Part shown: piece after piece, positions 12,071-44,900 of the stretch
How positions within the stretch are numbered: position 1 is the stretch's first letter
How the letters are laid out: every line of letters begins with the position of its first letter
From: Phaeosaccion multiseriatum
Lineage: Eukaryota; Protista; Ochrophyta, other classes
Direction of reading: 5' to 3'
Assembly: GCA_965112735.1 (NCBI GenBank)
Contig: OZ218965.1
Span: 1,612,001 to 1,676,000, forward strand
DNA length: 64,000 nt
The notes under the pieces: generated by a model
Seen by the model: the letters and a program-made list of their open reading frames with translations, nothing else
Database searches by the model: none
What the model was told of the DNA's origin: nothing
Program-made: the position numbers and the translations under genes

Positions 12071-12074
12071 AGAG

Positions 12075-20406: not shown

Positions 20407-20407
20407 G

Positions 20408-20600: not shown

Positions 20601-20605
20601 TCGTC

Positions 20606-21202: not shown

Positions 21203-21238
<36 letters not shown>

Positions 21239-21732: not shown

Positions 21733-22320
21733 GGCTGCAACGACAAGACAAGGAGGCGGTATCTAGACGAGTCCCTACCTTGGTGAGTCCACATTCGTGG
21801 AGGGCAGGATATCGCCCGTGAGTGACTGGAGAGGGGCGTGGGGGTAGGGACAGGACAGAGGAGAGGCGCGTGCGACAGGGAGAGGGCATAGGGAGAGGGA
21901 GAGTGAGGGGGCGGAGGGCGAGGAAGAGGGGGAAGGAGGGCGAGAGTGTGTGAGGGAGAGAGGTCGGAGGGAGAGGGCAGAGGGCAGGGAGAGAGAAAGG
22001 CCTGTAGCTACTCTCCCCCACCAAATGACTTGATCCACCCATCACCACGATAATAATTGTTCTCTGCCTCGCTTGCTTCCCCTCCCCTTGTCAGTATGTG
22101 TTGTCATCCGGGTGTGAGGTGGAGGACCTCCAACCGGTGCAGTTGCCTATTAGGGGCGCAACCTGATGTGTCAATGACAGCTCAGGAGCGATCAAGGTCC
22201 ATGCCGCTGCTGGTGGATGCATGAGCCCGTTCTTCGTCATTACTGGAGCACGGAGGCAGGCACACACACATACACCTGGCTCTGACTTGGAACAGTCCTT
22301 GCCGGCCACCGCGGAGAAAG

Positions 22321-22340
22321 GATAGTGTATCAGGGGTTGA
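22321..22340. mobile_element. Orphan MITE terminus
   Basis: gatagtgtatcaggggttga, identical to 24737-24756. Confidence 0.8.
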
Positions 22341-22431
22341 GTTTAGGGGGGCTGTTTGTGGGCCCTGGCGCTCATGGCTTGGCGCCAGACACATGGGCGG
22401 GTCCGTGGCCTGCCCTAATCGTTTTGCTTGC

Positions 22432-23030
22432 ATCGGAGGCATGACCTTCATGGAGATTGCGACGCTGCGCTTCTTGTCGAGGCAGAAGGAATGTGAGTAT
22501 GAGCAATGCAGGAGGAGTGTGAATTGTGTCTGAGCACTGTGAGTAGGGCAGAAGGAGGTGAGAGTCGTGGAGTGTATGTAGAGTGCTGGACTCGCTGCGC
22601 GGGGGAAGGTCAGGTCAGTCAGAGATGAGAGGCTTCTTCCTTGGCGGGTGCAACAAGTGGATGGGAGGCTCCATGCAGTTTGCTTTTGTTGCAACGCACG
22701 CGGGCTGACCAAACTCCGTCACCTTCCTCGCTGTCCTTCCTTCCTTCCTTCCTTCCCTGGGCGGTCCAGTTCCCTTCCAGATTGTCATGGCGACCACGCA
22801 GATCACCAACGGGGACAAGGTTGTGGAGGTGAGGGCGCGTGATGCGCGTGCAAGGTGCCGTCGCTCTCTGTAGTGCTTCTCCTGCGTGATGATGATTCCA
22901 AAGCAAGTCGTGGCTGCTGCTGACAAGTTGCGCTCTACCCTTTGTATTGCGCGTTGCCTCGCTTACTCTCTCTCTCTTCTGACACGCAGAGTCTCATGCC
23001 AGGCTTTGAGAACAACCTCATGCGGTGATG
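22432..23030 (+). pseudogene. Duplicated 3' fragment of Vps33 (last three exons with introns, first one truncated)
   Basis: IGGMTFMEIATLRFLSRQKE | FPFQIVMATTQITNGDKVVE | SLMPGFENNLMR*; reverse complement of 41204-41786. Confidence 0.9.
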
Positions 23031-23868
23031 CTTGGTGATTTGGGGGGGGGGGGCAAGACAAACGAGCCCGGAACCACAGGCAGGTCGAGCAAGACTTGTC
23101 TCGTGAAGAACAGACAAGCCAGCACCAGGAGAGGACGAAGCTTCTCACCCCTTGCGGTGGCATTGCCTATGTGTGGGGCAACACAGTCATCTTGCTGTTC
23201 GATGCTGGTGACGGTGTTGAACCAAGAGCCGGCTGTGCAACTGCAACGAGACGCGCGACCACAAGGTAAGAGGAGTAAGTAGGACCAACAGTAGACACCA
23301 GGTAGTACCGTTGCGGAGGACCAGCAGCAGACTACTAGGGAGTATTACGACCAACAGTAGACACCAGGTTGTACCATTGAGGAGGAAATAGTAGAAACCA
23401 AGTAGTACCGTAGAGCAGACACCAGATAGCACAGCAGTTCATTCATCGCGGGTTCCATTGGAACGCCTGTGCGCTGCCGCAGTCGAGGAGCGAATGAATG
23501 AGCCCCCCTTCCCCCCCGCCTCAGCCCTGTCCCCCCTCCGCCGTGCCCCCCCCCCCCCGTCCCCTCCAAAGGGCAGAGAAGTGGCGCAGTCATGCATGCT
23601 TGGGACTCATCTTCTTGTGGTACCATGACTTTCTTCCCCTTGTCAGAGTCGCTGGATGTGGAGCACGTGCCGCACCAAGGCATTGCATGGGCCAAGGGGT
23701 GGTAGGGCATATGGGTCAGGGGAAGAGCACCACCCCGACCTTGGCTGGGCGTCGCCTCTGTCGGAGAGACGTGCTGTCTTTGATGGCACGGACAGAGTGA
23801 GAGTACGCCTCTCAGCCGCTTCCCCGAAGGAGGAGCTGGCGCTCCAGCGAGGGGGCGGGCGGTCCGCT

Positions 23869-24005
23869 ACCAAGCACTGCCACACCTGTGGGCATCTGTA
23901 CATCACACGCACACACGGCCTTGCGCTACATCGAGACCCAAAGTCAGGTGCAGGGCCGTGTGTGCGCGTGTTGTGCAGATGTCCACAGGTGTGGCAGTGC
24001 TGGGT
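23869..24005. repeat. 137-bp stem-loop, copy 2
   Basis: Same arms as 19167-19303, opposite orientation. Confidence 0.88.
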
Positions 24006-24638
24006 TGGCTGCACCGGTGCTGGTGTCGTGCTCGTCACTCGTGTCACCCGAGGCCGTGTAGGGGGGAAAAGGGGATACTAAAAGTGAGAGCGTATAAGAC
24101 ATGATTGAGGCAGGTGTGAAAGGAGGGGACAAAGGGCATCATCAAGGGAGTGGTATTAGACATTAGCACATATAACTTCCGTCGCTACATCACAGAGAAC
24201 TTGGGAGTGCGCGGTAGCGAGCGAGGGCCTGCTGTTCTCTCCGCGAGAGGTCACTTGCGTGACCTTTTCAATCCTCCTTTGAAGCAAGCCCGCGCAGCAA
24301 ATCGTCCAGCCATGGGAGTCGTCTCGCTCCCTCCGATTCTCTGTGACATGCTTGTTGCTTGTTGCCACCAGAACCAAGCTCGCTCCTCCTCGTCCTGCGT
24401 CTGTCCGAAGCAACGTGTACGCACGTCGTCAACACGTTGGTTCTCCAATCGAAAAGAGGCCTCACCCCCCCGGGGTTGGCGGCTTACTCCCGGCCACCAA
24501 AAGCCCAACACAGACAGCTACAGAGAGAGCAAGAACAAATACAACAGGTGCGTGTGCGTCGCGTGATGCTTCCATGGAGCACCCTCGCGCGTGCGTCATT
24601 GCCAGCAGCGAATAGGTGGCGTGGTGTGGAGCCCATCC

Positions 24639-24756
24639 TCAACCCCTGATACACTATCCGCTATCCGCTATCGCCAGCTATCCCGCGCTATCCTCTATCG
24701 GCCGGCGGCCGATAGCGCGCTATCGAGAATTTGGGCGATAGTGTATCAGGGGTTGA
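24639..24756. mobile_element. MITE (CTATCCG family), 118 bp, perfect 20-bp TIRs, 6-bp TSD
   Basis: tcaacccctgatacactatc / gatagtgtatcaggggttga; ccatcc at 24633-24638 and 24757-24762. Confidence 0.88.
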
Positions 24757-24858
24757 CCATCCTCTTCTTCCTCCCTTCCCGCGCCTTCCCTGCTTTGACT
24801 CCGCACCCCCCCGCGCCTTGCCTTCTCTCCGCACCTCCCTCAGCAGACGAGCATCAAA

Positions 24859-25620
24859 ATGTCCCAAAACAAGAACGCGGCGTACGGCTCCTCGGCGGCC
24901 GAGGAGGGGGGAGATTAGTTCCAAATGACCAAAGGGGGAAGGGTCGTGAAGGTCGTGCCGCACACCGATGCCCGCCACAACCGTTCCGTGCCCCCCTCCT
25001 CCAACGACGGGGCCACCTTCAGCCTCGACAGCCACGAGGACTTCCCCCCTCTTCGCGAGGAGGCGTCGACACAGGGCGACGACAACAACCCCGTCGGGGG
25101 GCGGGAACAAGAGCAAAGCTCCCGCCCGCGGATTTCAAAATGCGAGGAATCAATGCTTCATGGCGGCGGCGCTTCAGCTGGTACGTACATACAGGGGCGA
25201 TGAGTCTGAGCCTAGTAGACCTCCCCTCCCAGGCTCACTTTTTACTCTTGCTTGCTTGCTTGCTTCCCCTTCAGTTGGACCCCGCCTTCCGGGACAGCTC
25301 CGTCCAGAACACGAGCAAAAGCCCCGTCGGGGTTGAAGCTGCGGCCCTCATCAAGGCCACCAACAAGCAAGGCCCGTCCCTGCCCCTTCACAAGATGGAG
25401 AAGCTGCTCGCAGAGGAGCGCATCTGCAAGTTGGGTGGGCAGAACGATGCCGGCGACCTCGCCGCTTCCCTGGTCCACCTCTGCGGGATGGGGGAGTCGG
25501 TCCTCCAGGTTATCGCCGACGCCGTCAGGCAAGGCTCTATCCAGGACGCTGTCCAGGACGGCTTGGCGAGTAACATGGCCCAGTACGTCATGGTCATCAT
25601 TAACGTGACGTACTGGGCGA
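24859..25620 (+). pseudogene. USP (peptidase C19) N-terminal fragment, left arm, disrupted
   Basis: Cys-box-like GFQNARNQCFMAAALQL, GT..AG intron, QQD-box-like LGGQNDAGDL; TAG and frameshift in exon 1. Confidence 0.7.
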
Positions 25621-25629
25621 GTAATATTA

Positions 25630-26395
25630 ACTCGCCCAGTACGTCACGTTGATGATGACCATGACGTACTGGGCCATGTTACTCGCCAAGCCGCCCTGGA
25701 CAGCGTCCTGGCTGGATAGACCCTTGCCTGACGGCGTCGGCGATAACCTGGAGGACCGACTCCCCCATCCCGCAGTGGTGGACCAGGGAAGCGGCGAGGT
25801 CGCCGGCATCGTTCTGCCCACCCAACTTGCAGATGCCCTCCTCTGGGCTGCGAGCAGCTTCTCCATCTTGTGGAGGGGCAGGGGCGGGCCTTGCTTGTTG
25901 GTGGCCTTGATGAGGGCCGCAGCTTCAACCCCGACGTGGCTTTTGCTCGTGTTCTGGACGGAGCTGTCCCGGAAGGCGGGGCCCAACTGAAGGGGAAGCA
26001 AGCAAGCAAGCAAGAGTAAAAAGTGAGCTCCGGAGGTTCACTTTTTACTAGACTCAGACCTCATCGCCCCTGTATGTACGTACCAGCTGAAGCGCCGCCG
26101 CCATGAAGCATTGATTCCTCGCATTTTGAAATCCGCGGGCGGGAGCTTTGCTCTTGTTCCCCCCGACGGGGTTGTTGTCGTCGCCCTGTGTCGACGCCTC
26201 CTCGCGAAGAGGGGGGAAGTCCTCGTGGCTGTCGAGGCTGAAGGTGGCCCCGTCGTTGGAGGAGGGGGGCACGGAACGGTTGTGGCGGGCATCGGTGTGC
26301 GGCACGACCCTCCCCCCTTTGGTCATTTGGAACCAATCTCCCCCCTCCTCGGCCGCCGAGGAGGAGCCGTACGCCACGTTCTTGTTTTGGGACAT
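25630..26395 (-). pseudogene. USP (peptidase C19) N-terminal fragment, right arm
   Basis: Exon 1 (26395-26084) open, MSQNK...GFQNARNQCFMAAALQL; exon 2 frameshifted; truncated at palindrome centre, no His box. Confidence 0.7.
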
Positions 26396-26532
26396 TGTGA
26401 TGCTCGTCTGCTGAGGGAGGTGCGGAGAGAAGGCAAGGCGCGGGGGTGCGGAGTCAAAGCAGGGAAGGGAAGGGAGGAAGAAGAGGATTGTCAACCCCTG
26501 ATACACTATCGCCCAAATTCTCGATATAGCGC

Positions 26533-26799
26533 GGGGGCCCGATAGCGGTGAATGTGTTCTGCCTTCGGATCACTCACAGTTACGGAAATCCCTGACTTAG
26601 CTATGTGCACCTGGATATAAGGGGGGATAGAGCTGCCCACGCACCTATCTCACTATACCCCTTAACGAATAGTCTCTACGTTGCCATTAGCCCGTACGTG
26701 TCAACCTCAGTAGTCTCTTCTATCCATTCTCAGTAGGGTTATCAGCCCCTTGTGCTCTTCACTCTACACTTCTCTTCACATCTTAATCAATCTATATCA
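26533..26799 (-). mobile_element. Probable 3' LTR preceded by a polypurine tract
   Basis: Minus strand agagaggaagaaga-ct-TGATATAG...AACACA; AT-richer than flanks; decayed acidic ORF upstream (26800-27550). Confidence 0.45.
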
Positions 26800-27557
26800 A
26801 GTCTTCTTCCTCTCTCGTCTGCCTGCGGGCAGGCCGGACTGGCTGTCTCTGTCTCTCCTTCGGCTCGCTTGTCATCCCGTAAGTACTACATCACGTTTAT
26901 AAACGTACTGTTTGTAACAGTTCCCCGGCCGGGATAGAAACGTTATTTACTCGGGATCTTGCAGTCGGAACCGGGATTGGATTCTTCAGCCTCTAGCAGC
27001 TCTGGCCTTTTCTTCGGCACCTCTCCCAGCAGGCTCCTCTTCTTCATCAGCTTCTTCCGAAGCTCCAGCACGGAGCATGTCTTTACTTTTCGCTTCTTCA
27101 TTGGCTACCTGCATTGGAGCGCCTATCTGAATCTTCTGCGCTCATTACTTCTCCGGACGGATCTTCTTCTTCGCCTTCTTCATCTGCTACTTCGACGGCC
27201 ATCGCATCATTCGTGGACTCTGCTGCTCGCATGCCCTCGGGTGCAGCTGCAACTTCCTCTACCACGGCATCTTCTTCTTCTACGGCGGTGTCTTCTTCTC
27301 GTCCTCTCCCTGTCATCGCTCTCGCCGTGGATCTTCGCCTACCGGACCCGCTCTCCGCCTCCGCATCCAGCCCTCCATCACCACCTTCGCCATCTTCGAC
27401 AGCTTTCTCTCCTTGATCGGATTCGAACACTCCCCTTCTCTCTCTTCCGCTGTGCCAACTGCCCCTGTGCCTCCTGCAGGCAACACCCCCAGCGCTGGAC
27501 GCCACCGTACCTCTGCCACGACGAGGACCAGTGCCACAGCAACTAAACTTGGGTGGC

Positions 27558-28922
27558 GGCGCTTGAAGCAAGCCCTGCAGCCAGCCTCCTGATGCCACGA
27601 ATGAAGCAACTCCCCCAACGCATGGGCCATGCCCCTGGCCAGGGTGGCTACATGGTTCCAGTCAACCCCAAAGAAAGCTCCCCAGTGCCGCTTCGGTTGA
27701 GGCAGGCAAGGCTTGATTGCCCTTCCCACCAACAGCCACAGAAGCAACCCGTCCCTTACACCTAATCTCCAGAGCAGTCTTGGTGATTCCATGCTGCTGC
27801 GCCGCCTTCCTAAGGGTGATGTTATCATTCTTCCTTCTCTGTCGACCCCTCGACATCGTATCGCCGTCTACATTGTGGTTGCTGTCCCGCTGATACAGCC
27901 ACTGCTGATGGGGGGGGGGGGGGGGGGGGGGTGGCCCGCTGGCGAGCCTCCGCGCCAAAGCTTGCCGTGCTGTCTTCGACAGCGGCCTCCCCTTTGCATC
28001 CTTCACACTCCGAAGGTCAATAGCCGTTGCTGAAGTCGCGAGCGCAGGTGGCTGTGACACACGTGTCGAAGAGTTTACCTCCCGGGGTTTTGTACCACCC
28101 GTCAGGAGATTCCTCCATGCTGCGTGCCTTCGCAGCAGCATCCTCCTCATCCTCGTCCTCGTCGCTGCTGCTGCTGATGCTGATGCTGATGCTGCTAATG
28201 CTGCTGCTGGTGGCACTCGTTCCTACCTCGACGGCTCCCTGTGTTGCACGTGAGAGTGGTCCCTTCTGCTGCCCTCCATCAAATGTCGTGGCTCTGCCCC
28301 TCTCCTCAGGGTGGTGGCCGTCATCTCCACTACCACCAGGCTCGACGTCTGAATCATCAGTAGACATGTGCATCTTTTAGTCTCCCTTTCTTTCAGTCTC
28401 CTGAATGTCTTGTGGTCGCCATTCGTCGCCTGCTGGAAGTCATTCCACGTCATCGATGGCAGGTCCTTCCCAAGGCTCTCAAGGATAGATTCATCAGATA
28501 GCCCCTTCACGTTAGGCCTGTCATGAGCGACAAGACGAAGAACAAGCAAGGATGAGACAAATGAAATTTGGAAGGTCGTTCCCAAGCTTCACATGTTGCT
28601 GTGGCTCACCTTGGTGTCTCTCCCCTCAGCTCGGCCAAGAAAGCCTTCAGTCCTTCCCTACTGGTACCAGGTGTGCCACTCACACCTTTGTTTACTTCTG
28701 ACCCAGGGTAAGTCATCCTTCAGGAATGAGAGATAATCGGGTCCCTCACGTGGCAAACCAAGGCTCTTTTGAACTCCAAGAAGGAAAGCACTCCCGCAGC
28801 CATCATCTTGTCCGGCCATTGCAATGGGGGCGACGCTACAGCCGGAACAGCAGCGGCAGCAGAGGCCATACACAGGGAGCTTGAAATCTGGGGAAGATAT
28901 TACTTTTAGTACCTTACGTAAG
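27558..28922 (-). mobile_element. Segment B copy 2: pogo/Fot1-like transposase relic
   Basis: TLRKAAQQHGITKTALEIRCKG...GGKGNQALPASTEAAL; inverted relative to 20606-21732. Confidence 0.6.
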
Positions 28923-28989
28923 TACGTCATGTAAGGGAAATTGGGTGTCTGTCCGCTGGGGAAATTGGCCCCCCCCCTCCAGAGGTGCG

Positions 28990-31735
28990 TCACCCACTCA
29001 CTCACTCACTCACTCACTCACTCACTCCCTCACTCACCCATCCACTCACTCACTCACTCACTCCCTCACTCACGCACTCACTCACTCCCTCACTCACTAC
29101 CTCACTCACTCACGCACTCTGTCCCTCACTCACTCCCTCCCTCCCTCCCTCACTCACTCACTCACTCACCCACTCACTCACTCACTCACTCACTCACTCA
29201 CTCACTCACTCACTCACTCACTCACTCACCCACTCACTCACTCACTCACTCACTCACTCACTCATTCACTCACTCACTCACTTAATCACTCACTCACTCA
29301 CTCACTCACCCACCCACTCACTCACTCACTCACTCACTCACTCACTCACTCACTCACTCACTCACTCACTCACTCACTCACTCCCTCACTCCCTCACTCA
29401 CTCTCTCTCACTCACTCACTCACTCACGCACTCACTCACGCACTCTGTCCCTCACTCACTCCCTCCCTCCCTCCCTCCCTCACTCACTCACTCACTCACC
29501 CACTCACTCACTCACTCACTCACTCACTCACTCACTCACTCACTCACTCACTCACTCACTCACTCACTCACTCACTCACTCACTCACTCACTCACTCACT
29601 CACTCACTCACTCATTCACTCACTCACTCACTTAATCACTCACTCACTCACTCACTCACCCACCCACTCACTCACTCACTCACTCACTCACTCACTCACT
29701 CCCTCCCTCACTCCCTCACTCACTCTCACTCACTCACTCACTCTCACTCACTCTCAATCACTCACTCACTCACTCACTCCCTCACTCACTCACTCACTCT
29801 CACTCACTCTCAATCACTCACTCACTCACTCACTCACTCACTCACTCACAAAGTCACCCACCCACTCACTCACTCTCACTCACTCACTCACCCACCCACT
29901 CACACTCACACTCGCTCACTCACCCACCCACTCACTCACTCTCACTCACTCACTCACCCACCCACTCACTCACTCTCACCCACCCACTCACTCACTCTCA
30001 CTCACTCACTCTCACTCACTCTCAATCACTCACTCACTCTCACTCACTCTCAATCACTCACTCACTCACTCACTCACTCACTCACTCACTCACTCACTCA
30101 CTCACTCACTCACTCACTCACTCCCTCCCTCACTCACTCACTCACTCATTCACTCACTCACTCACTCATTCACTCACTCACTAATTCACTCACTCACTCA
30201 CTCACTCACTCACAAAGTCACCCACCCACTCACTCACTCTCACTCACTCACTCACCCACCCACTCACACTCACACTCGCTCACTCACCCACCCACTCACT
30301 CACTCACTCACTCACTCACCCACCCACTCACTCACTCTCATCCACCCACTCACTCACTCTCACTCACTCACTCACACACTCTCACTCACTCTCAATCACT
30401 CACTCACTCTCACTCACTCTCAATCACTCACTCACTCACACACTCACTCACTCACTCACTCACTCACTCACTCACTCACTCACTCACTCATTCACTCACT
30501 CACTCATTCACTCACTCACTCACTTAATCACTCACTCACTCACTCACTCACTCACCCGCTCACTCACTCACTCACTCACTCACTCCCTCACTCCCTCACT
30601 GACTCAATCACTCTCAATCACTCACTCACTCACTCACTCACTCACTCAATCACTCCCTCACTCACTCACTCACTCACTCACCCACCCACTCACTCCCTCA
30701 CCCACTCAGTCCCTCAGTTACTCACGCACTCACTCACGCACTCACTCACGCACTCACTCACGCACTCAGTCCCTCACTCACTCGCTCACTCACTCACCCA
30801 CCCACTCACTCACTCACTCACTCACTCACTCACTCTCACTCACTCTCAATCACTCACTCACTCTCACTCACTCACACACTCACTCACTCACTCACTCGAT
30901 CACTCACTCACTCACTCATTCACTCACTCACTCATTCACTCACTCACTCACTTAATCACTCACTCACTCACTCACTCACTCACCCACTCACTCACTCACT
31001 CACTCACTCACTCACTCACTCCCTCACTCCCTCACTCACTCAATCACTCTCAATCACTCACTCACTCACTCACTCACTCAATCACTCCCTCACTCACTCA
31101 CTCACTCACTCACCCACCCACTCACTCCCTCACCCACTCAGTCCCTCAGTTACTCACGCACTCACTCACGCACTCACTCACGCACTCAGTCCCTCACTCA
31201 CTCGCTCACTCACTCACCTACCCACTCACTCACTCACTCACTCACTCACTGACTCACTCACTCACTCACTCACTCACTCACTCACTCACTCACTAATTCA
31301 CGCACTCACTCACTCACTCAGTCACTCAGTCACTCACTCACTCACACACTCACTCACTCACTCACTCGCTCACTCACCCACTCACTCACTCACTCACTAC
31401 CTCACTCACTCACGCACTCACTCACTCACTCACTCACTCACTCACTCACTCAATCACTCACTCACTCACTCAATCACTCACTCACTCACCCACCCACTCA
31501 CTCACTCACTCACTCACCCACTCACTCCCTCACTCCATCACTCACTCACTCACTCACTCACTCACTACCTCACTCACTACCTCACTCACTGACTCACTCA
31601 CTCACTCACTCACTCCCTCCCTCCCTCCCTCACTCACTCACGCACTCACTCACTCACGCACTCACTACCTCACTCCCTCACTCACTCACTCACTCTCTCA
31701 CGCACTCACTCACTCACGCACTCACTCACCCACCT
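28990..31735 (+). repeat. (ACTC)n satellite array with internal higher-order duplications
   Basis: Tetranucleotide array with recurring landmarks cttaatcac, cacaaagtcacc, cagtccctcagttac. Confidence 0.97.
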
Positions 31736-31956
31736 CGGTAAGAGACGCCATCGCCGGTAGCACTCACTTTTTGTTCGCGCTGCTGCTGAGCTGCTCCTCT
31801 TGGCCTGTTGGTATTAAGCCGTCACAACCCACCCTGACCCCCCTACCCCCGTGCCTCTTCTTCCTGTCTGGCTTGGCCTTTGCTACAAAGTGCCTCCTTC
31901 CGTCCTCCTCAATCTCTGTTTCATATCGCTCTTCTTCCGCTTCTTGGTCCCTTCTT

Positions 31957-32488
31957 CCCTCCCTCCGTCCCTCCCTCCCTCCCTCCCTCCCTCCGTCCCT
32001 CCCTCCCTCCCTCCCTCCCTCCCTCCCTCCCTCCCTCCCTCCCTCCCTCCCTCCCTCCCTCCCTCCCTCCCTCCCTCCCTCCCTCCCTCCCTCCCTCCCT
32101 CCCTCCCTCCCTCCCTCCCTCCCTCCCTCCCTCCCTCCCTCCCTCCCTCCCTCCCTCCCTCCCTCCCTCCCTCCCTCCCTCCCTCCCTCCCTCCCTCCCT
32201 CCCTCCCTCCCTCCCTCCCTCCCTCCCTCCCTCCCTCCCTCCCTCCCTCCCTCCCTCCCTCCCTCCCTCCCTCCCTCCCTCCCTCCCTCCCTCCCTCCCT
32301 CCCTCCCTCCCTCCCTCCCTCCCTCCCTCCCTCCCTCCCTCCCTCCCTCCCTCCCTCCCTCCCTCCCTCCCTCCCTCCCTCCCTCCCTCCCTCCCTCCCT
32401 CCCTCCCTCCCTCCCTCCCTCCCTCCCTCCCTCCCTCCCTCCCTCCCTCTCATCCCTCCCTCCCTCACTCCCTCCCTCCCTCCCTCCC
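31957..32488 (+). repeat. (CCCT)n array
   Basis: ~530-bp near-perfect run. Confidence 0.97.
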
Positions 32489-32529
32489 TCTGTGGTGCAG
32501 GTGGGACAGGCTCAAATACGTAATTATTA

Positions 32530-32700
32530 TGTAGGTAGAATTTGTATTCCAGTTAGGCTGATGGAGGCTGGCTGGGTTCTCTGGCCCTTGCCGCACTCCT
32601 GAACCCGTACAGACCAGTCGATAGCGCTCCTTTAAACAAGGAGGCTGTCTAGGGTCTTAGGGTGGGATAGTCCCTGTTATTAATAATATACTTTGTATCA
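32530..32700 (-). mobile_element. Probable LTR remnant with polypurine tract
   Basis: Minus strand aagaggggagagaaga-ttgc-TGATACAAAG...CCTACA. Confidence 0.4.
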
Positions 32701-32925
32701 GCAATCTTCTCTCCCCTCTTATTGGGACCGGCACATCACGCTCAGCTTGGGGGTACCTTCCTCCTCTTAGGCAGAGGGAGGTAGCGGCCCCACACCTCCC
32801 TCCCTCCCTTCCTCCCTCCCTCCCTCCCTCCCTCCCTCCCTCCCTCCCTCCCTCCCTCCCTCCCTCCCTCCCTCCCTCCCTCCCTCCCTCCCTCCCTCAC
32901 TCACTCACTCACGTATCCTTTCACT

Positions 32926-33199
32926 TGTAGCCAACCCTGCTATCGCTAGCAAGTCGGAAAGTGAGCCAATATTCGAAGAGATGGGTGCAAGGTTGTAAAG
33001 TTTGGAGGCCTTGCCTCAGCTCCAGTAAAGAGCCGAGTCTCCTTTAGCTTTATGGTGGATAAGCTAAGAGTGAGGGAGCGCCACAGACTACTACTCCCGG
33101 TGGGCTATGTGCCACCTCATTGTGCCACGTAAGATGTCATATGGGCATGGTGACGGTTACACGTACTAAGGCAATGAATATGAGGCTGTAGGGGCAACA
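32926..33199. mobile_element. Probable solo LTR (274 bp)
   Basis: TGTAGCC...GGCAACA termini flanked by 4-bp direct repeat CACT. Confidence 0.55.
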
Positions 33200-33564
33200 C
33201 ACTTACTCACTCGTCCAGTCCCTCCCTCCCTCCCTCCCACCCTCCCTGCCTGCCTCCCACCTGTACAAGAAGAGCGTGATAGGGGAGGTTCTCCCGTAAC
33301 TGCGTCATGTAAAACGACATACGCACGACCGACATGCGCTGTCGCCTACAGATAGGATGGAACTAGACACACGGACAAGGTAACAGCAACCCCAAAGCCA
33401 GCCTAGCAGCCAGCCTTGCCTCTATTAACTTATCGCATGCTAGTCCTAAACGACCACCTACGCACATAGGATAGTGGGAGCCACGCCACTCGTTCTCACC
33501 GTATCTGCCTGGGCCTGGGCCATTGACTTACGAATGGACTTTCCACAGGGAGGAATAGCGGGAT

Positions 33565-33988
33565 AGAGGGAGGGAGGGAGGGATGGATGGAGGGAGGGAG
33601 GGAGGGGCGGGGGGAGGGAGGGAGAGAGGGAGGGAGAGAGGGAGGGAGGGAGCGAGGGAGGGAGCGAGGGCGGAGGGGGATACCGGGATAGAGGGAGGGA
33701 GGGAGGGGCGGAGGGAGGGAGGGAGGGAGGGAGGGAGGGAGGGAGGGGATGGAGGGGAGGGAGGGAGGGAGGGAGGAAGGGAGGGAGGGAGGGAGGGAGG
33801 GAGGGAGGGAGGGAGGTGTAGAGGGAGGGAGGGAGGGAGGGAGGGAGGGAGGGAGCCAGGGAGGGAGGGAGGGAGGGAGGGAGGGAGGGAGGGAGGGAGG
33901 GAGGGAGGGAGGGAGGGAGGGAGGGAGGGAGGGAGGGAGGGAGGGAGGGAGGGAGGGAGGGAGGGAGGGAGGGAGGGAGGGAGGGAGG
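33565..33988 (+). repeat. (AGGG)n array
   Basis: Complementary strand of the nearby (CCCT)n arrays. Confidence 0.95.
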
Positions 33989-33997
33989 CACTAGCCC

Positions 33998-34155
33998 TGC
34001 TTCTGAGGCGACCCTGCTTCCTGCTTCTGGCCGGCGCCAGCCGGCCAGGCAGGTTCCAGGTTCTGGGGGAAAGCCTTTTAATAAGGCAATGATGCGGGCC
34101 AAGGCTGGTTCCTGCTTCTGGGCTGGCCTGTCTCAGAAGCATGTCAGGAGCCGAA
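33998..34155 (-). mobile_element. Truncated inverted copy of MITE 8202-8432
   Basis: ctcagaagcatgtcaggagccgaa end and internal motifs match rc of 8201-8420. Confidence 0.8.
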
Positions 34156-34469
34156 GAGCAGGGGAGGAAAGGGAAGGGCGGGGATCACCACGTGGATGGA
34201 GTCATGGGAGGCTTCAACAGCGTGAGTGCGTTCAGGAGAGGCAGTCTTTTAGCTGCCGGGTAGGGAAAGGGCGCTGCAAACACTTGCTCGGTGGGTGTAA
34301 TTATTTGTATTTATGGGATTTTAAGCCAATCATCCTTTGTAATTATGTGTACTTCGTAGTATTACGTGCGTGTGCAGGAGGAGAGAAAATGAGGACCGCC
34401 TGGGAAGTTGGTAAGATTTGATCTCTTGGTGGTCACATACTTCGTACAAGTAGTACGTAACAGAGCCAG

Positions 34470-34595
34470 CTGTGTGCCTTGGCGTAAAAGCTGTTGGTCT
34501 AAGAGACAGAAAGAGGGTCTACCGCCCCGCTGTGTGCCTTGGCGTAAAAGCTGTTGGTCTAAGAGAGAGAGAGAGAGAGAGGGTCTACCGCCCCT
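34470..34595 (+). repeat. 60-bp tandem duplication
   Basis: ctgtgtgccttggcgtaaaagctgttggtctaagaga...gagggtctaccgcccc x2. Confidence 0.85.
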
Positions 34596-34619
34596 GCAGA
34601 GCCCCCCCCCCCCCCCTCC

Positions 34620-37297
34620 CACTCACCCACTCAAACGATAGCACTCACTCACTCACTCACTCAATCACTCCCTCACTCCCTCACTCCCTCACTCACCCAC
34701 CCACTCACTCACTCACTCACTCACCCACCCACTCACTCACTCACTCACCCACTCACTCACTCACTCACTCACTCACTCACCCACCCACCCACCCACTCCC
34801 ACACTCACTCACTCACTCTCAATCACTCACTCACTCAGTCCCTCAGTTACTCACTCACGCACTCAGTCCCTCACTCACTCGCTCACTCACTCACCCACCC
34901 ACTCACTCGCTCACTAACTCACTCACTCACTCACCCACCCACCCACCCACTCACTCACTCATTCACTCACTCTCACTCACTCACTCACCCACTAACTCAC
35001 CCACCCACTCACTCAGTCCCTCAGTTACTCACTCACGCACTCAGTCCCTCACTCACTCGCTCACTCACTCACCCACCCACTCACTCACTCACTCACTCAC
35101 TCACTCACTCACTCACTCACCCACTCACTCACTCACTCACTCACTCACTCACTCACTCACTCACTCACTCACTCACTCACTCACTCACTCACTCACTCAC
35201 TCACTCACTCACTCACTCACTCACTCACTCACTCACTCACTCACTCACTCACTCACTCACTCACTCACTCACTCACTCACTCACTCACTCACTCACTCAC
35301 TCACTCACTCACTCACTCACCCACTCACTCACTCACTCACTCACTCACTCACTCACTCACTAACTCACTCACTCACTCACTCACTCACTCACTCACTCAC
35401 TCACTCACTCACTCACTCACTCACTCACTCACTCACTCACTCACTCACTCACTCACTCACTCACTCACTCACTCACTCACTCACTCACACACTCACACTC
35501 ACACTCGCTCACTCACCCACTCACTCACTCACTCACTCACTCACTCACTTCCTCACTCACGCACCCAGTCCCTCACTCACGCACTCACTCACTCACGCAC
35601 TCGCTCACTCACCCACTCACTCACTCACTCACTCACGCACTCACACTCACACTCGCTCACTCACGCACTCACTACCTCACTCACTACCTCACTCACTCAT
35701 TCCCTCACTCACTCACTCCCTCACTCACTCCCTCACTCACTCCCTCCCTCCCTCACTCACTCACGCACTCACTCACTCACTCACTCACTCACTCACTCAC
35801 TCCCTCACTCACTCACTCACTCACTCACTCACGCACTCACTCACTCACTCACTCACTCACTCACGCACTCACTACCTCACTCCCTCACTCCCTCACTCAC
35901 TCATTCACTGACTCACGCACTCACTCACCCATCCACTCACTCACTCACTCACTCACCCACTCACTCACTCACTCACTCACTCACTCACTCACTCACTCAC
36001 TCACTCACTCACTCACTCACTCACTCACTCACTCACTCACTCACTCACTCACTCACTCACTCACTCACTCACTCACTCACTCACTCACTCACTCACTCAC
36101 TCACTCACTCACTCACTCACTCACTCACTCACTCACTCACTCACTCACTCACTCTCTCACTCACTCACTCACTCACTCACTCACTACCTCACTCACTACC
36201 TCACTCACTCATTCCCTCACTCACTCACTGACTCACTCACTCCCTCACTCACTCCCTCCCTCCCTCACTCACTCACGCACTCACTCACTCACGCACTCAC
36301 TCACTCACGCACTCACTCACTCACGCACTCACTACCTCACTCCCTCACTCCCTCACTCACTCATTCACTGACTCACGCACTCACTCACCCATCCACTCAC
36401 TCACTCACTGACTCACCCACTCACCCACTCACTCACTCACTCACTCACTCACTCACTCACTCACTCACTCACTCACTCACTCACTCACTCACTCACTCAC
36501 TCACTCACTCACTCACTCACTCACTCACTCACTCACTCACTCACTCACTCACTCACTCACTCACTCACTCACTCACTCACTCACTCACTCATTCTCTCAC
36601 TCACTCACTCACTCACTCACGCACTCACTCACTTCCTCACTCACTCACGCACTCATTCCCTCACGCACTCAGTCCCTCACTCACTTATTCACTCACTCAC
36701 TCACTCATTCACTCACTCAATCACTCACTCACTCAGTCCCTCGCTCACGGACTCACTCACTCACTCCCTCCCTCACGCACCCAGTCACTCACTCACTCAC
36801 TCACGCACTCACTCACGCACTCTGTCCCTCACTCACTCCCTCCCTCCCTCCCTCCCTCACACACTCACTCACCCACCCACCCACCCACTCACTCACTCAT
36901 TCACTCACTCACTCCCTCACTCACTCCCTCCCTCACTCACTCACTCACTCACTCACTCACTCACTCACTCACGCACTCACCCACTCACTCACTCACTTCC
37001 TCACTCACTCACTCACCCACCCACCCACTCACTCACTCACTCACGCACTCACTCACTCATTCACTGACTCACGCACTCACTCACCCATCCACTCACTCAC
37101 CCATCCACCCACTCACTCCCTCACTCACTCACGCACTCACGCACTCACTCACTCCCTCACTCACTACCTCACTCACTCAGTCCCTCACTCACTTATTCAC
37201 TCACTCGATCTCCCAGTCACTCACTCAATCCCTCAACCCCCCCCCCCCTCCCCCCCCTCCCTCACTCACTCACGCATTCATTCACTCACTCACTCAC
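34620..37297 (+). repeat. (ACTC)n satellite array 2
   Basis: Same motif, strand and landmark variants as 28990-31735. Confidence 0.97.
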
Positions 37298-37427
37298 GGG
37301 TGAGAGTGAGGGTGAGGGTGGGGATGAGCCAGCATAGATGAGCACGTCTCTTCTTGAGTGAGATGCGGATAGTGTCGTTGGCATTCGATTAGATGGTCGG
37401 TCTGACAGAACTACAGCTTCCCTCCTC

Positions 37428-37487
<60 letters not shown>

Positions 37488-38160
37488 CTCAGTTGGTGTT
37501 GTCGTGGTTGTTCTGGTGGGCTCAGACTCCCCTCACCAGGCGTCTGCCAACCTCTTCAGCACCACGTTCGCCAACGCTGGGTTCGGGTCGTTAATGCACA
37601 CTGTGCACAGCTGTACGGGTGGCCGGGTCTTGGGCAGGAAAGGGAGAGCCATGGCGCCTGTGCATAGTGTAGACGGGGGGGAGCAGGGACACATCAATAC
37701 CTCAGATGCGGCACCAGCAGGGAGTAGATACTTGCTGCCCCCGCACTTACTTCTCTCCTCCATGCTGGGGCCGGTCGCGGTGCCGTGCCGACCGTCAGCT
37801 CCCTTGGCGCTGGACGCCTTGCCTGTGTAGGCAGGGAAAAACGAACAGCAGCAGCAGCCAGGTCAGTGCGACACGTGGCGACCCAGACACCCACAGTCAC
37901 GAGAAAACGCACCGCCCTCACTGGGGTCAAGCCCGCCCTCCTCCCCGATGAGGCGGATGTTGTTGTTGCCCTCCCTTCGGTTCTTCTGGGCGATGAGGCC
38001 TGCTCTCGAGGCGGAAGGGGGAGCAGCAGCCAGTCAGTCGTGAGGATGGGTGGGTGAGGTTGAATCCATACCACGCAGCACTCACCTTGGCCTTTCTCCC
38101 GCTGGACGGCACTGTCCATGCTTCCGTCGTCCACGTCACCGTAGCTACTCCCACTCCCCG

Positions 38161-38913
38161 ATAACGCTGGCCTTGTGGACGCCCTGTACATGCTGGCCAA
38201 GGAAGAAAGCCTGGCACCTGAGCTGTAGCAGCAGGTGCAAGACACCGTGAATGCGGCGATAGGCAAGGGCATAGCTCCTTCTCTAGGAGTATTCCTGCAG
38301 GCGGGGGAGAAGGATCCTCTCTTGTCTCTCGTCCGCAAGGCCTGCGCAGAGGTGGAGGTAGCTCCGGGGGTGACTCTTTCGAAGGTGCAGTTGGCCAAGT
38401 CACTCAGCCAGGATGTCCACGTCATCATGGCCGCCTGCGCGCCTCTGCAGGAGTTCGTCGACAGGACCCCGTACCGGGACCAAAAATTCGACCACAGCAC
38501 GCCGACCAACAATAGCCTCTTCTCCCGCCCCGAGAAGAGGCTATTGTTGGTCGGCGTGCTGTGGTCAAATTTTTGGTCCCGGTACGGGGTCCTGTCGACG
38601 AACTCCTGCAGAGGCGCGCAGGCGGCCATGATGACGTGGACATCCTGGCTGAGTGACTTGGCCAACTGCACCTTGCCCGAGCGCAGGCCTTGTGGACGAG
38701 AGGCAAGAGAGCATCCTCCTCCCCCGCCAGCAGGAATACTCCTAGAGAAGGAGCTATGCCCTTGCCTTCCCTCTGCGCCCTCCCTCGAGGCAGCCTCCCC
38801 CGCAGCACGCTCAATCGCCGCATTCACGGTGTCTTGCACCTGCTGCTGCAGCTCAGGTGCCAGGCTTTCTTCCTTGGCCAGCATGTACAGGGCGTCCACA
38901 AGGCCAGCGTTAT
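38161..38913. repeat. ~750-bp palindrome with 7-nt spacer (38525-38531)
   Basis: ataacgctggccttgtggacg...cctcttctc-ccgcccc-gagaagagg...cgtccacaaggccagcgttat. Confidence 0.95.
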
Positions 38914-39006
38914 AAACGGGGGTTCCGAGACGAATCTCCCTATCCTTCTTCCTTGCCTTGCTTGCCGCCTTGCTTACCGCATTGCTGCTGGTGGTGGTGG
39001 TGGGAC

Positions 39007-39044
<38 letters not shown>

Positions 39045-39303
39045 CTGCTGCTGCTCTTGCTGCCGCTTTCGTCACTCTCCTCCTCCCAATCGCTTTCATC
39101 GCTCTCATCCTCCCAATCGCCTTCATCGCTCTCATCCTCCCAATCGCTTTCGACGTCGAGTTCTCCTGCAGGTGCGTGTGGAAGAAAAAAGAGAAAGGGG
39201 GGGGGGGCATGAGTTCCTACTAGGTGGTGTGGACACGGGAAAAAAAAGGCATCACTCACTCCACTCCAATCCTTCCTTCCTTCCGCCCTCACCTGGCCAG
39301 CCC

Positions 39304-39342
<39 letters not shown>

Positions 39343-39580
39343 CTGTTGCTTGTTGTCCACAAGTCGCTCAACGTCTTCCGACTGGGTGCTGGTTGCTGCG
39401 GAGGCTGCCGCTCCTGAGCGGTCGTCTCTGGCTGCCTTCTTGCTTGCCCGTCCCTTGCCCGTCGGTCGACGCGTCTTGTCGCTTCCTCTTCCGCCGATAT
39501 CGCCTCTTCCGGAGACTTTCCGCGATGGTGTGGGTACCGGTAGCTTCTCCAGAGGGGGGGCGATCCATGTCCATTCGTGG
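38532..39580 (-). pseudogene. Unidentified intron-containing gene fragment truncated at the palindrome centre
   Basis: Donor at ~39290, acceptor at ~39165; acidic (DWEDESDE)x3 then REIRLGTPVYNAGLVDALYMLAKEE...; frameshifts. Confidence 0.45.
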
Positions 39581-39664
39581 CTGAAAGAGAGAGAGAGGCC
39601 ATTGGCGCGCAACAGTAGTGAAAGAGGGAGAGAAAATGATGATGAGAGAGGGCTTCTTGTCGCG

Positions 39665-39749
39665 GGCGGGCGCTATCGGGCTCCGATAGCGGATAGCGCG
39701 CCGGCTCGCGCCGGCGATAGCGGATAGCGTATATTCTATCAGGGGTTGA
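39665..39749 (-). mobile_element. Half MITE of the CTATCCG family
   Basis: gatagcggatagcg repeats ending ctatcaggggttga; same flank (gcccatcc) as 24639; other terminus missing. Confidence 0.7.
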
Positions 39750-40278
39750 GGATGGGCTCCACACCACGCCACCTATTCGCTGCTGACAATGACGCACGCG
39801 CGAGGGTGCTCCATGGAAGCATCACGCGACGCACACGCACCTGTTGTATTTGTTCTTGTGCTCTCTGTAGCTGTCTGTGTTGGGCTTGTTTTGGTGGCCG
39901 GGAGTAAGCAGACAACCCCGGGGGGGTGAGGCCTCTTTTCGATTGGAGAACCAACCGTGTTGACGACGTGCGTACACGTTGCTTCGGACAGACGCAGGAC
40001 GAGGAGGAGCGAGCTTGGTTCTGGTGGCAACAAGCACCATGGACTTTGAGGTAGTGGCCTAGCTACCGCTCACTCCCAAGTTCTCTGTGATGTAGCGACG
40101 GAGGAATGATAGATGTTGCTAATGTCTAATACCACTCCCTTGATGATGCCCTTTGTCCCCTCCTTTTACACCTGCCTCAATCATGTCCTATACGCTCTTG
40201 CCTTTAGTATCCCCTTTGCCCCCTACACGGCCTCGGGTGACACGAGTGACGAGCACGACACCAGCACCGGTGCAGCCA

Positions 40279-40415
40279 ACCCAGCACTGCCACACCTGTG
40301 GGCATCTGCACAACACGCACACACACGGCCCTGCACCTGACTTTGGGTCTCGATGTAGCGCTAGGCCGTGTGTGTGTGTGATGTACAGATGCCCACAGGT
40401 GTGGCAGTGCTGGGT
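40279..40415. repeat. 137-bp stem-loop, copy 3 (~0.8 kb downstream of Vps33 stop)
   Basis: Arms extend to cacacggcc/ggccgtgtg. Confidence 0.9.
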
Positions 40416-41203
40416 AGCGGACCGCCCGCCCCCTCGCTGGAGCGCCAGCTACCTTCTCCTTCGGGGAAGCGGCTGAGAGGCGTACTCTCACTCTGTCCGT
40501 GCCATCAAAGACAGCACGTCTCTCCGACAGAGCCGACGCCCAGCCAAGGTCGGGGTGGTGCTCTTCCCCTGACCCATATGCCCTACCACCCCTTGGCCCA
40601 TGCAATGCCTTGGTGCGGCACGTGCTCCACATCCAGCGACTCTGACAAGGGGAAGAAAGTCACGGTACCACAAGAAGATGAGTCCCAAGCATGCATGACT
40701 GCGCCACTTCTCTGCCCTTTGGAGGGGACGGGGGGGGGGGGGGGCACGGCGGAGGGGGGACAGGGCTGAGGCGGGGGGGAAGGGGGGCTCATTCATTCGC
40801 TCCTCGACTGCGGCAGCGCACAGGCGTTCCAATGGAACGCGCGATGAATGACCTGCTGTGCTACCTGGTGTCTGCTCTACGGTACCACCTGGTGTCTTCC
40901 GTGGGTCCTAATGGTGTCTGCTGCTGGTCCTCCGCAACGGTACCACTTGTTGGTCCTACTTACTCCTCTTACCTTGTGGTCGCGCGTCTCGTTGCAGTTG
41001 CACAGCCGGCTCTTGGTTCAACACCGTCACGAGCATCGAACAGCAAGATGACTGTGTTGCCCCACACATCGGCAATGCCACCGCAAGGGGTGAGAAACTT
41101 CGTCCTCTCCTGCTGCTGGCTTGTCTGTTCTGCACGAGACAAGTCGAGCTCGACCTCTGGTTCCGGGCTCGTTTGTCTTGCCCCCCCCCCAAATCACCAA
41201 GCA

Positions 41204-41906
41204 TCACCGCATGAGGTTGTTCTCAAAGCCTGGCATGAGACTCTGCGTGTCAGAAGAGAGAGAGAGTAAGCGAGGCAACGCGCAATACAAAGGGTAGAGC
41301 GCAACTTGTCGGCAGCAGGACTTTGGAATCATCATCACGCAGGAGAAGCACTACAGAGAGCGACGGCACCTTGCACGCGCATCACGCGCCCTCACCTCCA
41401 CAACCTTGTCCCCGTTGGTGATCTGCGTGGTCGCCATGACAATCTGGAAGGGAACTGGACCGCCCAGGGAAGGAAGGAAGGAAGGAAGGAAGGTGACGAA
41501 GTAGTTTGGTCAGCCCGCGTGCGTTGCAACAAAAGCAAACTGCATGGAGCCTCCCATCCACTTCTTCCTTGCAGCCGCCAAAGAAGAAGCATCTCATCTC
41601 TGACTGACCTGACCTTCCCCCGCGCAGCGAGTCCAGCACTCTACACTCCACGACTCTCCACTCCTCCTGCCCTACTCACAGTGCTCAGATACAATTCACA
41701 CTCCTCCTGCATTGCTCATACTCACATTCCTTCTGCCTCGACAAGAAGCGCAGCGCCGCAATCTCCATGAAGGTCATGCCTCCGATAAAGTACACGAGCA
41801 TGACCTTCTTCGTTGGCATGCCGACTTGCGACTGCGGGGCGGCGGCGGCACCACCAGCTTCGGCATACTCACGCACTGCGCAGAGCAAGGGAACAAAAGA
41901 AAAGTC

Positions 41907-41947
<41 letters not shown>

Positions 41948-44900
41948 CACATGGTGAGCGCGAGCAGTGGAAACGTCTGTCGGGGCAGAAACAGAACCCC
42001 AAAAGCGCAGAAAGGCACAGGGGCTGTAAAAGGGTGACCAGACCGGCCTAACTACCCTACCTGCTTCCTCCAAGTCTTCCACGGGCTCCAGCGCCGATTG
42101 GTCAAACTCCGTCAACAGGCCGGGCAAGAGCCGGAGGGCTTCTGCCACAGAGGCGTTGCCCCATCCGCCCGCGCGAGCCGCGGCCTGCACCAGACGGACG
42201 GAGAGCGGGCAGTAGCCCGACGATACGTAGCCAATGTCATCGAGGCCAGGGGTGTGCACGTCGACGCTGTCGTTAATGAGGCGCAAGGAGCGACGTAGGG
42301 TGTTCCACGTGCTGCTGCCACTGCCCGAGCGAGAGGAGGTGAGGAGGAGGAGGAGGAGGAGGAGGAGGAGGAGGAGGAGGAGGAGGAGGAGGAGGAGGAG
42401 GAGGAGGAGGAGGAGGAGACATGACAAGGATCAGAGGGGGTAGAGGGCTACTCCCGTGTCGTCTGCCCAAGATAGTCCTCCCTCTGCACTGCTGACAGCC
42501 CCCCTGGAATAGCCCTCTCTCACGCACGCCTTCCCACCCACCTGTCCACCCCCCACGAGGCCTCTCTCTTGTGCAGAAGCCCAATCTTCTCCAAGTTGGT
42601 GAGCGTAAAGAGGTGTTCGTAGCCGTACGTCTGGACGATTTCGCGCTTCAGAGTGTCGTACTTGTTGCTGTGCGTGCGTGCGTGCGTGTGCGAGAGACAG
42701 AGAGATAGAGGGAAGGATTCGGCGGCGGCGGTAGGGATTGAGCAGTTGTCGAGCAACACTCCGAAAGGGGAGGCAGCGCGGGGGGGGAGCTCCATGACCA
42801 GTGCGAGGCTCAAGGAAATACTACTTTTTCTTCTTCCTCCCTCTGGGTAATCATGTAGTACATATTTGGAGCATGCAAGCCCACATCAGCCCGACCCTCC
42901 CTCCCAGCCCACCTGCGTATACCGCCATTTGTGACGCTCTGGAGACAGAGTAGGCGAAGCACTCTCAGCACGGGCTCCTGCGAGTAGAGTAGAGGGCATA
43001 CATACATACGCACGAGTGAAAGGATGAACGAACAACTGTGCAACGCATCATCAATTGACTGAACGAGGCACCATACAACCAACGTACGAGGTCCCTTCTC
43101 CCCCCTCCCGCGAACCCTATTTCGAATACAATGTAGTCTCGTCTTCCTTTCCTCTCCACTACCCAATGCAAGACTGGCGTGCCAAATGCCGACCCTCCCA
43201 AACACTTGCCCTTCCCTCACCTCCTCCTGCCCTACCGTGTATCACCAACTGCCCCTGGTACCTGCATGTTGATGGCCTCCTCCAGCATCTCGTAGTTAAT
43301 GTCTCCCTCCAGCATACTCCGCTCCGTCTGCCAGCGCTGCCGAAAGGCCGGGGAGTCCGTGGTCTTCTTGATAAGCTCGGCAATGTTGATGTGCTGCGTT
43401 GCCGACCTGTAGGCAGTGCGTGCGGTGAGGGGTGGGGGAGAAGTGAGAATGGGGGCTAGTCGAATGAGACGAGGGAGGAAAGAGGAGGGGAGAAGGGCGC
43501 CGGGAGGAAAGGAGGGGAGTGCTGTCTCCGACTACCACTACTACTACTACGACTACTACTGCTGCTACTACTACTACCACTACTACTGCTACGACGACAA
43601 CGACGCCACGACCACCACCACCACCATAACCACTACAACTTTATAGCAACTCTCTGCCTCTCCCTCCCTGCCTCTCCATCTCTCCCAACTCCCTCGCTCC
43701 TCTCTCTCCCCCTCTCTCCTCTCTCTCTCTCTCTCTCCCTCTCTCCTCTCTCTTTCTACTCTCTCTCTCTCTCTCTCTCTCGCCTTACTTGTAGTTCTGC
43801 GTAAGGCCAGGGATGCGCTTTACAAAGTCATGTATCTCCCCGATGGATTGGTCCTTGTTGCTGCGGAAGCTCGAGTACGAAGCTCGAATCTCCTTGGCTT
43901 TTTCCTGTGTGAGACGGGGGCATGCCAGGCAAGAAGGCAGGAGGACGCACACAAACACCGACGGGGAGATAAGACATGACACAACAACACTTCCAACAAA
44001 CTGTTCTCTTGCCTCATGAATGAGTCCCCTCCCCATGATGCCGTGAGGTGAGTGAGAGAGTGAGTGAGTGAGAGAGCGAGTGAGTGAGTGAGTGAGCGAG
44101 TGAGTGAGTGAGTGAGAGAGTGAGTGAGTGAGGGCGTGCTCCGCTCCCTCATACTTTACTCACTCATGCTCCGCTCCCTCATACTCCTCCGCTCGGATTA
44201 CCTGAAGGAAGGGCCCGAGAGCCTCAACGTTGAGATCCCGAATGACGCCAAACAAGGCGTCGTTCGAGTTGAGCGGAATGGCGACCTGCTTCTGCTTCTT
44301 CTTCCCTCCTGCCCCTCCCTGTGCAGCACTGCTGCCCCCCCCCGCTGCCCCACCACCGCCCTCCTTCTTGCCAGCCCCTGCCCCCCCCGGGGACTCCTCC
44401 ACTCCCGCCAAGTCGGGGTCGAGCTTCACAAAGCCGTTGCCAATGCCAATCAGCTCGTCGATCAAACCTGTTGACGGACAAACCAATTGGCATACATACA
44501 AACGCGGGGGGAGGGGCAAGTGGGAATCAATGACATAAGGTGCACACGATGAAGAACGACAAGTGAGGAGGGTCGGTTTCTGCCCTGCCCTACCCTACCC
44601 TGCACACCCTCACCCCCTACTCCGTGAGCCTGTACCGGCCCCTCCCCTCCCCTCCAGAGAGAGAGAGAGAGAGAGAGTATAGCCCTCCGTAGTACTAGTA
44701 CCTTCGTACCTTCGTAGGTGAGCGGCGTGACCAACGCCGAGGCCAGGTCCACCCCCCTGTCGAGCATGACGAGGGTGTCGATGGAAGGCACCCTACAGCT
44801 CTCATCGTCGGGCTGCTGCGGGTCCATCTCCTCGAGAGAGAGACGGAGGAGCTTCTTGAGCACCTGTTTGCTGCTCGAGCCCTTGGCCTGGACAATAGCA

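Follow-up and report, generated by a model that had tools for sequence, protein, structure and literature searches.

The inverted interstitial triplication known in the human genome as DUP-TRP/INV-DUP (duplication-triplication/inverted duplication) is said to have been described by Carvalho and colleagues in 2011, and Slotkin and colleagues reportedly described in 2005 the maize Mu killer, a hairpin-RNA locus that arose from an inverted duplication of its target gene. In yeast, origin-dependent inverted-repeat amplification (ODIRA) leaves three copies of a segment, of which the middle one is inverted, with very short self-complementary junctions and secondary arm loss (PMC4689423, PMC10766183); the junctions of the yeast inverted triplications use pre-existing inverted repeats of 2-14 bp, and secondary deletions of the arms are common (PMC10766183). 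Fold-back duplication at a double-strand break gives spacerless palindromes with a few bases of microhomology and nested inverted repeats at the centre (PMC7999016; for templated inverted insertions, PMC11724301), and in the hairpin-RNA (hpRNA) loci of Drosophila the 5' portion of a gene has been duplicated in inverted orientation along with its own upstream region, so that a long RNA hairpin is possible (PMC10317233). Traits of this kind recur at a locus of the alga Phaeosaccion multiseriatum (GCA_965112735.1; 67 Mb in 22 contigs, G+C ca. 58%) that lies in positions 1,612,001-1,676,000 of contig 16 (OZ218965.1), a stretch of 64,000 nucleotides called the window hereafter. The locus most probably holds one old palindrome, with arms of 3.19 kb that run from the last exon of a Vps33-like gene to the end of the second exon of a USP-like sequence; we give this reading a probability of about 0.72. 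The locus as a whole is best read as an inverted duplication or triplication of a type already known, now decayed and secondarily split at the hairpin of a miniature inverted-repeat transposable element (MITE). Unlike ODIRA and DUP-TRP/INV-DUP as described, it has a first copy that is only partial and one junction that is unreadable, and the structure is old and invaded by repeats. The products of fold-back at a break are usually dicentric or terminal, whereas this structure is interstitial and stable. In contrast to the hpRNA loci and Mu killer, finally, its arms are decaying.

The original prediction had seen twin cassettes here: one upstream module (Vps33 3' end, a segment A with a 137-bp hairpin, a segment C, and a MITE with CTATCCG ends) placed before two unrelated gene fragments, once from 22432 on the plus strand and once from 41786 on the minus strand, each fragment being folded back into a palindrome. 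The mirrored layout is real. Self-BLAST of the window returned three inverted blocks at 93-96% identity (22432-23332 against 41786-40916, 93.4%; 23393-24221 against 40897-40059, 95.8%; 24356-24718 against 40036-39670, 93.3%), and both fold-backs, predicted near 25625 and 38528, were recovered, the first as a spacerless palindrome of ca. 1.8 kb (24715-26532, 93.5%) centred at 25623 and the second centred at 38528 (97.6%). We then aligned the left side (22300-25623) to the right-hand pieces laid end to end. Four blocks proved collinear, namely 22432-23332 with 41786-40916, 23393-24218 with 40897-40062, 24353-24701 with 40039-39683, and 24716-25622 with 26533-25630 (93.5% identity in the last), and at the join of the two right-hand pieces only 14 nt, in the palindromic core of the MITE, stayed unaligned. 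Substitution divergence between the arms is 3.1, 3.3, 4.6 and 2.7% for the four blocks in order, the indels measure 1-10 bp, transitions are about as frequent as transversions, and the substitution comparison of the arms gave no CpG bias and no mutation bias of the kind left by methylation or repeat-induced point mutation. Since the four blocks follow each other in order and at equal divergence, the twins are best taken as the two arms of one palindrome; the level of divergence, the indels and the balance of transitions and transversions argue for one event and for real divergence rather than read error. Palindromes with arms above 300 bp were absent from ca. 117 kb of unrelated control loci, so the fold-backs in the window are not chance features.

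The left arm (22432-25623, plus strand) is intact and runs from a piece of the last Sec1/Vps33 exon through segment A, segment C and the complete MITE to the USP-like exons, which point toward the centre. The right arm lies on the minus strand in two pieces. The inner one (25624-26547) contains the inverted USP-like exons and the right-hand ca. 70 bp of the MITE, while the outer one (39670-41786, copy 3 in what follows) holds the left-hand ca. 90 bp of the MITE, segment C, segment A, and a Sec1 3' end that is continuous with the real gene. That gene (exons at 41730-41849 and 44708-44902, minus strand) had been predicted correctly: both exons match the Sec1 family (PF00995), and its only PDB matches are to VPS33A (E = 9e-4). 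The outer end of the duplication (22432/41786) falls inside the last detected Sec1 exon, the copied piece beginning ...IGGMTFMEIA.... Genes in this genome contain introns, and bacterial-style lists of open reading frames (ORFs) are only a rough guide to them; nothing in the DNA resembles human sequence. The remainder of a USP-like gene was sought beyond the outer end of the left arm, by tblastx against the related loci on contig 1, and not found.

The MITE between segment C and the USP-like exon bears on the order of events. It spans 121 bp (24640-24760, plus strand), is short and non-coding, and has 20-bp terminal inverted repeats that start TCAACCCCTG; its target duplication measures 6 bp (CCATCC), and its core is palindromic (DNA fold z = -5.8). 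Its copies number in the hundreds (at least 40 scored, 293 candidate hits), and as a MITE it has nothing unusual about it save that its hairpin core became the later break point of a palindrome arm. In the whole-genome search, segment C (24353-24640) had only two matches outside the local copies, both on contig 1, at C1:3696.3k (locus L017) and C1:3814.4k (locus L018), where it directly adjoins the USP-like exon without the MITE (C1:3696.3-3697.5k and C1:3813.5-3814.7k); the two loci thus carry the empty site. This adjacency marks segment C as the native upstream region of the USP-like exon rather than a portable unit. Copy 3 carries this MITE's left end at the identical insertion site (39670-39760), and the MITE was therefore inserted before the duplication. 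From the empty sites and the MITE end in copy 3 together it follows that the left arm keeps the ancestral order of segment C, MITE and exon. The switch between the two "cargoes" had been placed exactly within the MITE; homology does end inside it, at 24701-24718, and the switch itself is one break seen from its two sides.

The palindrome turns within 25576-25672, around a 7-nt loop with a nested 13-nt inverted repeat in each arm (z = -17). The turn lies 4 nt past the predicted exon end (...ATTAAC|GTGA), a point from which L018 continues into an intron, GTGAGTGCG, and then into a degenerate (TG)n tract of ca. 1 kb. At the centre we find a 3-nt microhomology (TGA) and the motifs ACGT/GTAC. Microhomology combined with nested short inverted repeats is typical of serial template switches. 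On this basis the following course of events may be proposed. The minus strand would originally have carried, in this order, the Vps33-like gene, segment A, segment C (as the upstream region of the next gene), the MITE, and the first two USP-like exons. Where the second USP-like exon ends, a copying error would have made the DNA double back, likely through a template switch at a few self-complementary bases at a stalled fork or through fold-back priming at a break, and 3.19 kb, from there back into the last Vps33 exon, would have been duplicated in inverted orientation to give the spacerless palindrome centred at 25623. Later, the right arm would have been broken in the hairpin core of the MITE; the 13.1 kb that now separate its two pieces consist of transposons, microsatellites that have expanded, and a segment with a relative on contig 12. 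Repeated fold-back repair, offered in the original prediction as the second option, comes near to this likely mechanism, although what recurs is the folding of a USP-like exon family (four of five loci, see below) and not that of the module of segments A and C.

A third, partial copy of segment A, which the original prediction had missed, lies to the left at 18947-20406 (copy 1, plus strand). It has the same orientation as copy 3 and comes without segment C and the Sec1 end. By self-BLAST, 18947-20164 matches 40051-41275 directly (89.7%) and 18958-19877 matches 24218-23300 in inverted orientation (96.2%); the same-orientation counterpart of copy 1 within copy 3 spans 40051-41423. The three copies are consequently oriented + - +, with copy 1 at 18947-20406, the inverted copy 2 at 22432-24718, and copy 3 at 39670-41786. 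The predicted 137-bp hairpin is present in every one (19167-19303, 23869-24005 and 40279-40415; DNA fold z = -11 against shuffles). A three-way alignment of segment A is roughly star-like (54, 22 and 32 unique changes in 1372 shared columns), and with arms that differ by 2.7-4.6% and copies that are roughly equidistant, the structure has the single age expected of an inverted triplication. The + - + layout is the hallmark of such a triplication, of the ODIRA or the DUP-TRP/INV-DUP type; two successive fold-backs would leave the same arrangement. Between copies 1 and 2 (20407-22431) there is now transposon fill: a 116-bp MITE (20407-20522) with many genome copies at 93-99% identity, a repeat X (20789-22317) with at least 12 copies, on contigs 1, 3, 4, 9 and 14, and a 121-bp repeat (22311-22431). 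We considered X and its relative X' (27549-28684) as outer palindrome arms or as the ends of a carrier transposon, and rejected both ideas for a repeat that is dispersed in at least 12 copies; X and X' also show no special closeness, copies on other contigs being as near to either of them. Elsewhere, on contig 4 (C4:3433000-3438000, locus L023), a copy of repeat X has short stretches of segment A and a copy of the CTATCCG MITE a few kb away at most, an arrangement which implies that parts of segment A are themselves dispersed repeats.

The block (26548-39669, 13.1 kb) by which the right arm is interrupted in the MITE core begins with a transposon, T1 (26548-27545), matched at 95% identity on contigs 13 and 3. 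Its copies elsewhere all start at one query position (base 16-17), and this shared start marks a true element end; the T1 terminus lies 15 bp past the end of the arm homology, straight after MITE sequence. T1 is followed by X' (27542-28900), by ca. 8 kb of (TCAC)n, (TCCC)n, (GAGG)n and (CACT)n arrays (28990-37297), and by 2 kb of DNA (37559-39623) that is related to C12:1345.8-1346.8k and C12:1297.8-1299.0k on contig 12 at 79-89% identity. Within the arrays, an inverted pair of (TCCC)n and (GAGG)n lies between two 2.7-kb (TCAC)n tracts that point the same way. The second palindrome, the supposed second cargo, sits in the block at 38161-38913 with its centre at 38528. Its core (38382-38674) is 97.6% identical between arms, and older outer arms follow at 38161-38260 and 38814-38913, so that the whole of 753 bp stands at 79%; the arm sequence is common to contig 12. 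The contig 12 relative has a smaller palindrome of its own (C12:1346169-1346335), made from the same arm sequence and set in the same flanking order, which argues that the second fold-back probably arrived with the segment and was not made by any cassette. The second cargo, described as a fragment of a different gene, has no family match; it is the edge of the 13.1-kb block that interrupts the right arm.

Several observations weigh against this history. Copy 1 measures only 1.46 kb and has neither segment C nor the MITE nor the USP part, which obliges a one-step triplication to assume later losses, and the outer junction between copies 1 and 2 (20407-22431) has been overwritten by transposons and is unreadable. 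The block looks old (79-89% identity to its contig 12 relative), whereas the arms it separates differ by only ca. 3%; either the block came in ready-made, or gene conversion between the arms makes the palindrome look younger. Ca. 20 bp of the MITE core, moreover, are found on both sides of the block.

In L017 and L018 the USP-like sequence opens with an ATG and an ORF of 270-272 aa. Neither the 270-aa ORF nor the single predicted exons gave a significant Pfam match, a PDB sequence search gave none, ten ORFs across the region had no significant Pfam match, and a six-frame scan of the whole genome for the UCH domain (PF00443) gave no match at the USP-like locus. The predicted "USP fragment" is therefore without Pfam or PDB support, and yet a motif resembling a Cys box, G-x-x-N-x-x-N-Q-C-Y-M-x-x-A-L-Q, aligns exactly where the UCH domain begins in six true USP genes from the same genome (best E = 5.6e-5; the space searched was only 33 kb), and the next predicted exon holds a Q-N-D-A motif. 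These similarities weakly suggest a USP identity for the first cargo. In the window, the USP-like copies have stops and frameshifts on both arms.

The USP-like exon occurs at five loci in the genome, four of them in separate fold-backs. Besides the one in the window (3.19-kb arms at ca. 93-96%, turning at the end of the second predicted exon), there are those of L017 (C1:3697.2-3697.9k; 374-bp arms, 98.4%), which forms a clean 474-bp insertion relative to its sister L018 (92-97% identical), of L019 (C3:1244.7-1246.2k; 763-bp arms, 87%), set in another nest of inverted duplications, and of L026 (C12:1324.6-1325.6k; 479-bp arms, 86%, with an 88-bp spacer); L018, the fifth locus, has no fold-back. 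It had been suggested to search the genome for palindromes beyond other copies of segment C, and the outcome was divided between L017, which has its fold-back, and L018, which has none. The arms include locus-specific flanks, from which we conclude that the fold-backs formed in place. With only five related loci and arms that take in locus-specific host DNA, they do not behave as foldback transposons. Three of the four turns fall within 5 nt of a predicted exon end (L019:4460-4500, i.e. C3:1245480; L026:2015-2115, i.e. C12:1325020; and 25600-25650 of the window). Two of them come just before a conserved GTACGT that follows the Cys-box exon, the other at ...ATTAAC|GTGA by a (TG)n-rich intron, and a splice donor that is GTACGT, which is partly self-complementary, or GTGAGT beside (TG)n may suffice to account for where the turns lie. 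That the family is a set of hairpin loci of independent origin, its four fold-backs having arisen in place on four different contigs, is a doubtful proposition that we nonetheless keep in view. If it were true, then either hairpin RNAs against the USP-like family are selected, or a process linked to splice sites or microsatellites repeatedly inverts exon ends. Either way, one small gene-fragment family is flagged as repeatedly folded back.

Two further observations concern these loci. The nest of inverted duplications around the fold-back of L019 (C3:1244300-1255230, which includes locus L032) contains a + - + repeat of a 450-bp upstream piece. L017 and L018 themselves (C1:3692000-3702000 and C1:3809000-3819000) are the two copies, ca. 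117 kb apart, of a segmental duplication in inverted orientation that exceeds 10 kb and is 90-97% identical.

The window could also have been shaped by two separate events, an inverted segmental duplication of the Vps33 end, segments A and C and half the MITE, and a local, MITE-bounded fold-back of the USP-like exons. Comparison of L017 with L018 offers a precedent: the fold-back of L017 is clean and local, a hairpin MITE of 91 bp occupies its centre, a second, incomplete copy of this MITE lies at the far end, and MITE-bounded local fold-backs thus do occur in this genome. For the window, however, this explanation needs two independent breakpoints within ca. 15 nt of each other in one MITE, and it needs all segments to have reached equal divergence by chance; we consider it unlikely. 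As to the 91-bp element itself, a perfect hairpin at L017:5527-5617 (C1:3697526-3697616) in the centre of the 474-bp inverted insertion, it occurs in at least 40 copies that are 97-100% identical and lie for the most part on contig 14 at 2.37-2.73 Mb, and it looks like the product of a very recent burst.

A single split palindrome, as we read the locus, could still yield RNA. The central 1400 nt fold as one stem (-1511 kcal/mol), the arms share 61-89 exact 21-mers with paralogues, and the genome has a Piwi-domain (Argonaute-type) gene at C13:419.6-420.9k and RNase III domains at three loci. Given these components, a hairpin RNA from the USP-like palindrome is possible. It is another matter whether this palindrome, whatever its origin, functions today as a hairpin-RNA locus, within a small set of loci retained because their small RNAs silence the USP-like family. 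Palindromes formed in place at four of the five USP-like loci, with differing centres and none in the ca. 117 kb of control sequence, and the presence of parts for RNA interference (RNAi) speak for such a function, but stops and frameshifts interrupt most of the copies, a full UCH domain, as an intact target would have, was detected in none of the paralogues, and arm identity drops with apparent age. A working locus is, on balance, quite improbable.

Far less survives of the reusable cassette, in which segment A, segment C and the MITE would act as a promoter module that turns captured gene pieces into hairpin RNAs silencing gene or transposon families. Both palindromes would form long double-stranded RNA if transcribed, as the stem of the central 1400 nt illustrates, and the RNAi genes and shared 21-mers just mentioned can be counted in its favour. 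Yet the module is known only as local copies: the whole-genome search found segments A and C together nowhere else, with no other cargo, and segment C is native to the USP-like exon. The second cargo is joined at a break and not at an element end, while the contig 12 relative carries its smaller fold-back at the matching place. There are no transposon termini or target duplications at the bounds of the module, and the arms of the older palindromes are decaying (86-94%), their pairing showing no preservation. Nor does the module resemble a gene-capturing transposon such as a Pack-MULE, Helitron or CACTA element, having local copies only and its outer end in a host exon. The cassette thus becomes very improbable, and with it goes the attractive but wrong idea of a natural "RNAi trap cassette"; the locus serves instead as a worked example of how a single inverted duplication can mimic two cassettes once repeats have split it at a MITE hairpin. 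It also adds to the signs of frequent inverted duplications and triplications in the genome of this alga.

An assembly artefact, through chimeric fold-back reads or a mis-join in repeats, deserves a thought in a region with two 2.7-kb tetranucleotide arrays and many other repeats that are hard to assemble, but it is scarcely credible for arms that differ by ca. 3% substitutions and by 1-10-bp indels, when artefactual fold-backs are near-identical, and for a structure that lies in the middle of a 2.4-Mb contig and has its like at paralogous loci.

Farther to the left, the window contains a 4-kb minisatellite of 30-bp units (11233-15241; ca. 108 copies, 91% matches) with ORFs of ca. 1500 aa on both strands. 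We asked whether it corresponds to the arrays downstream of the contig 1 copies and rejected the idea, those arrays being degenerate (TG)n tracts.

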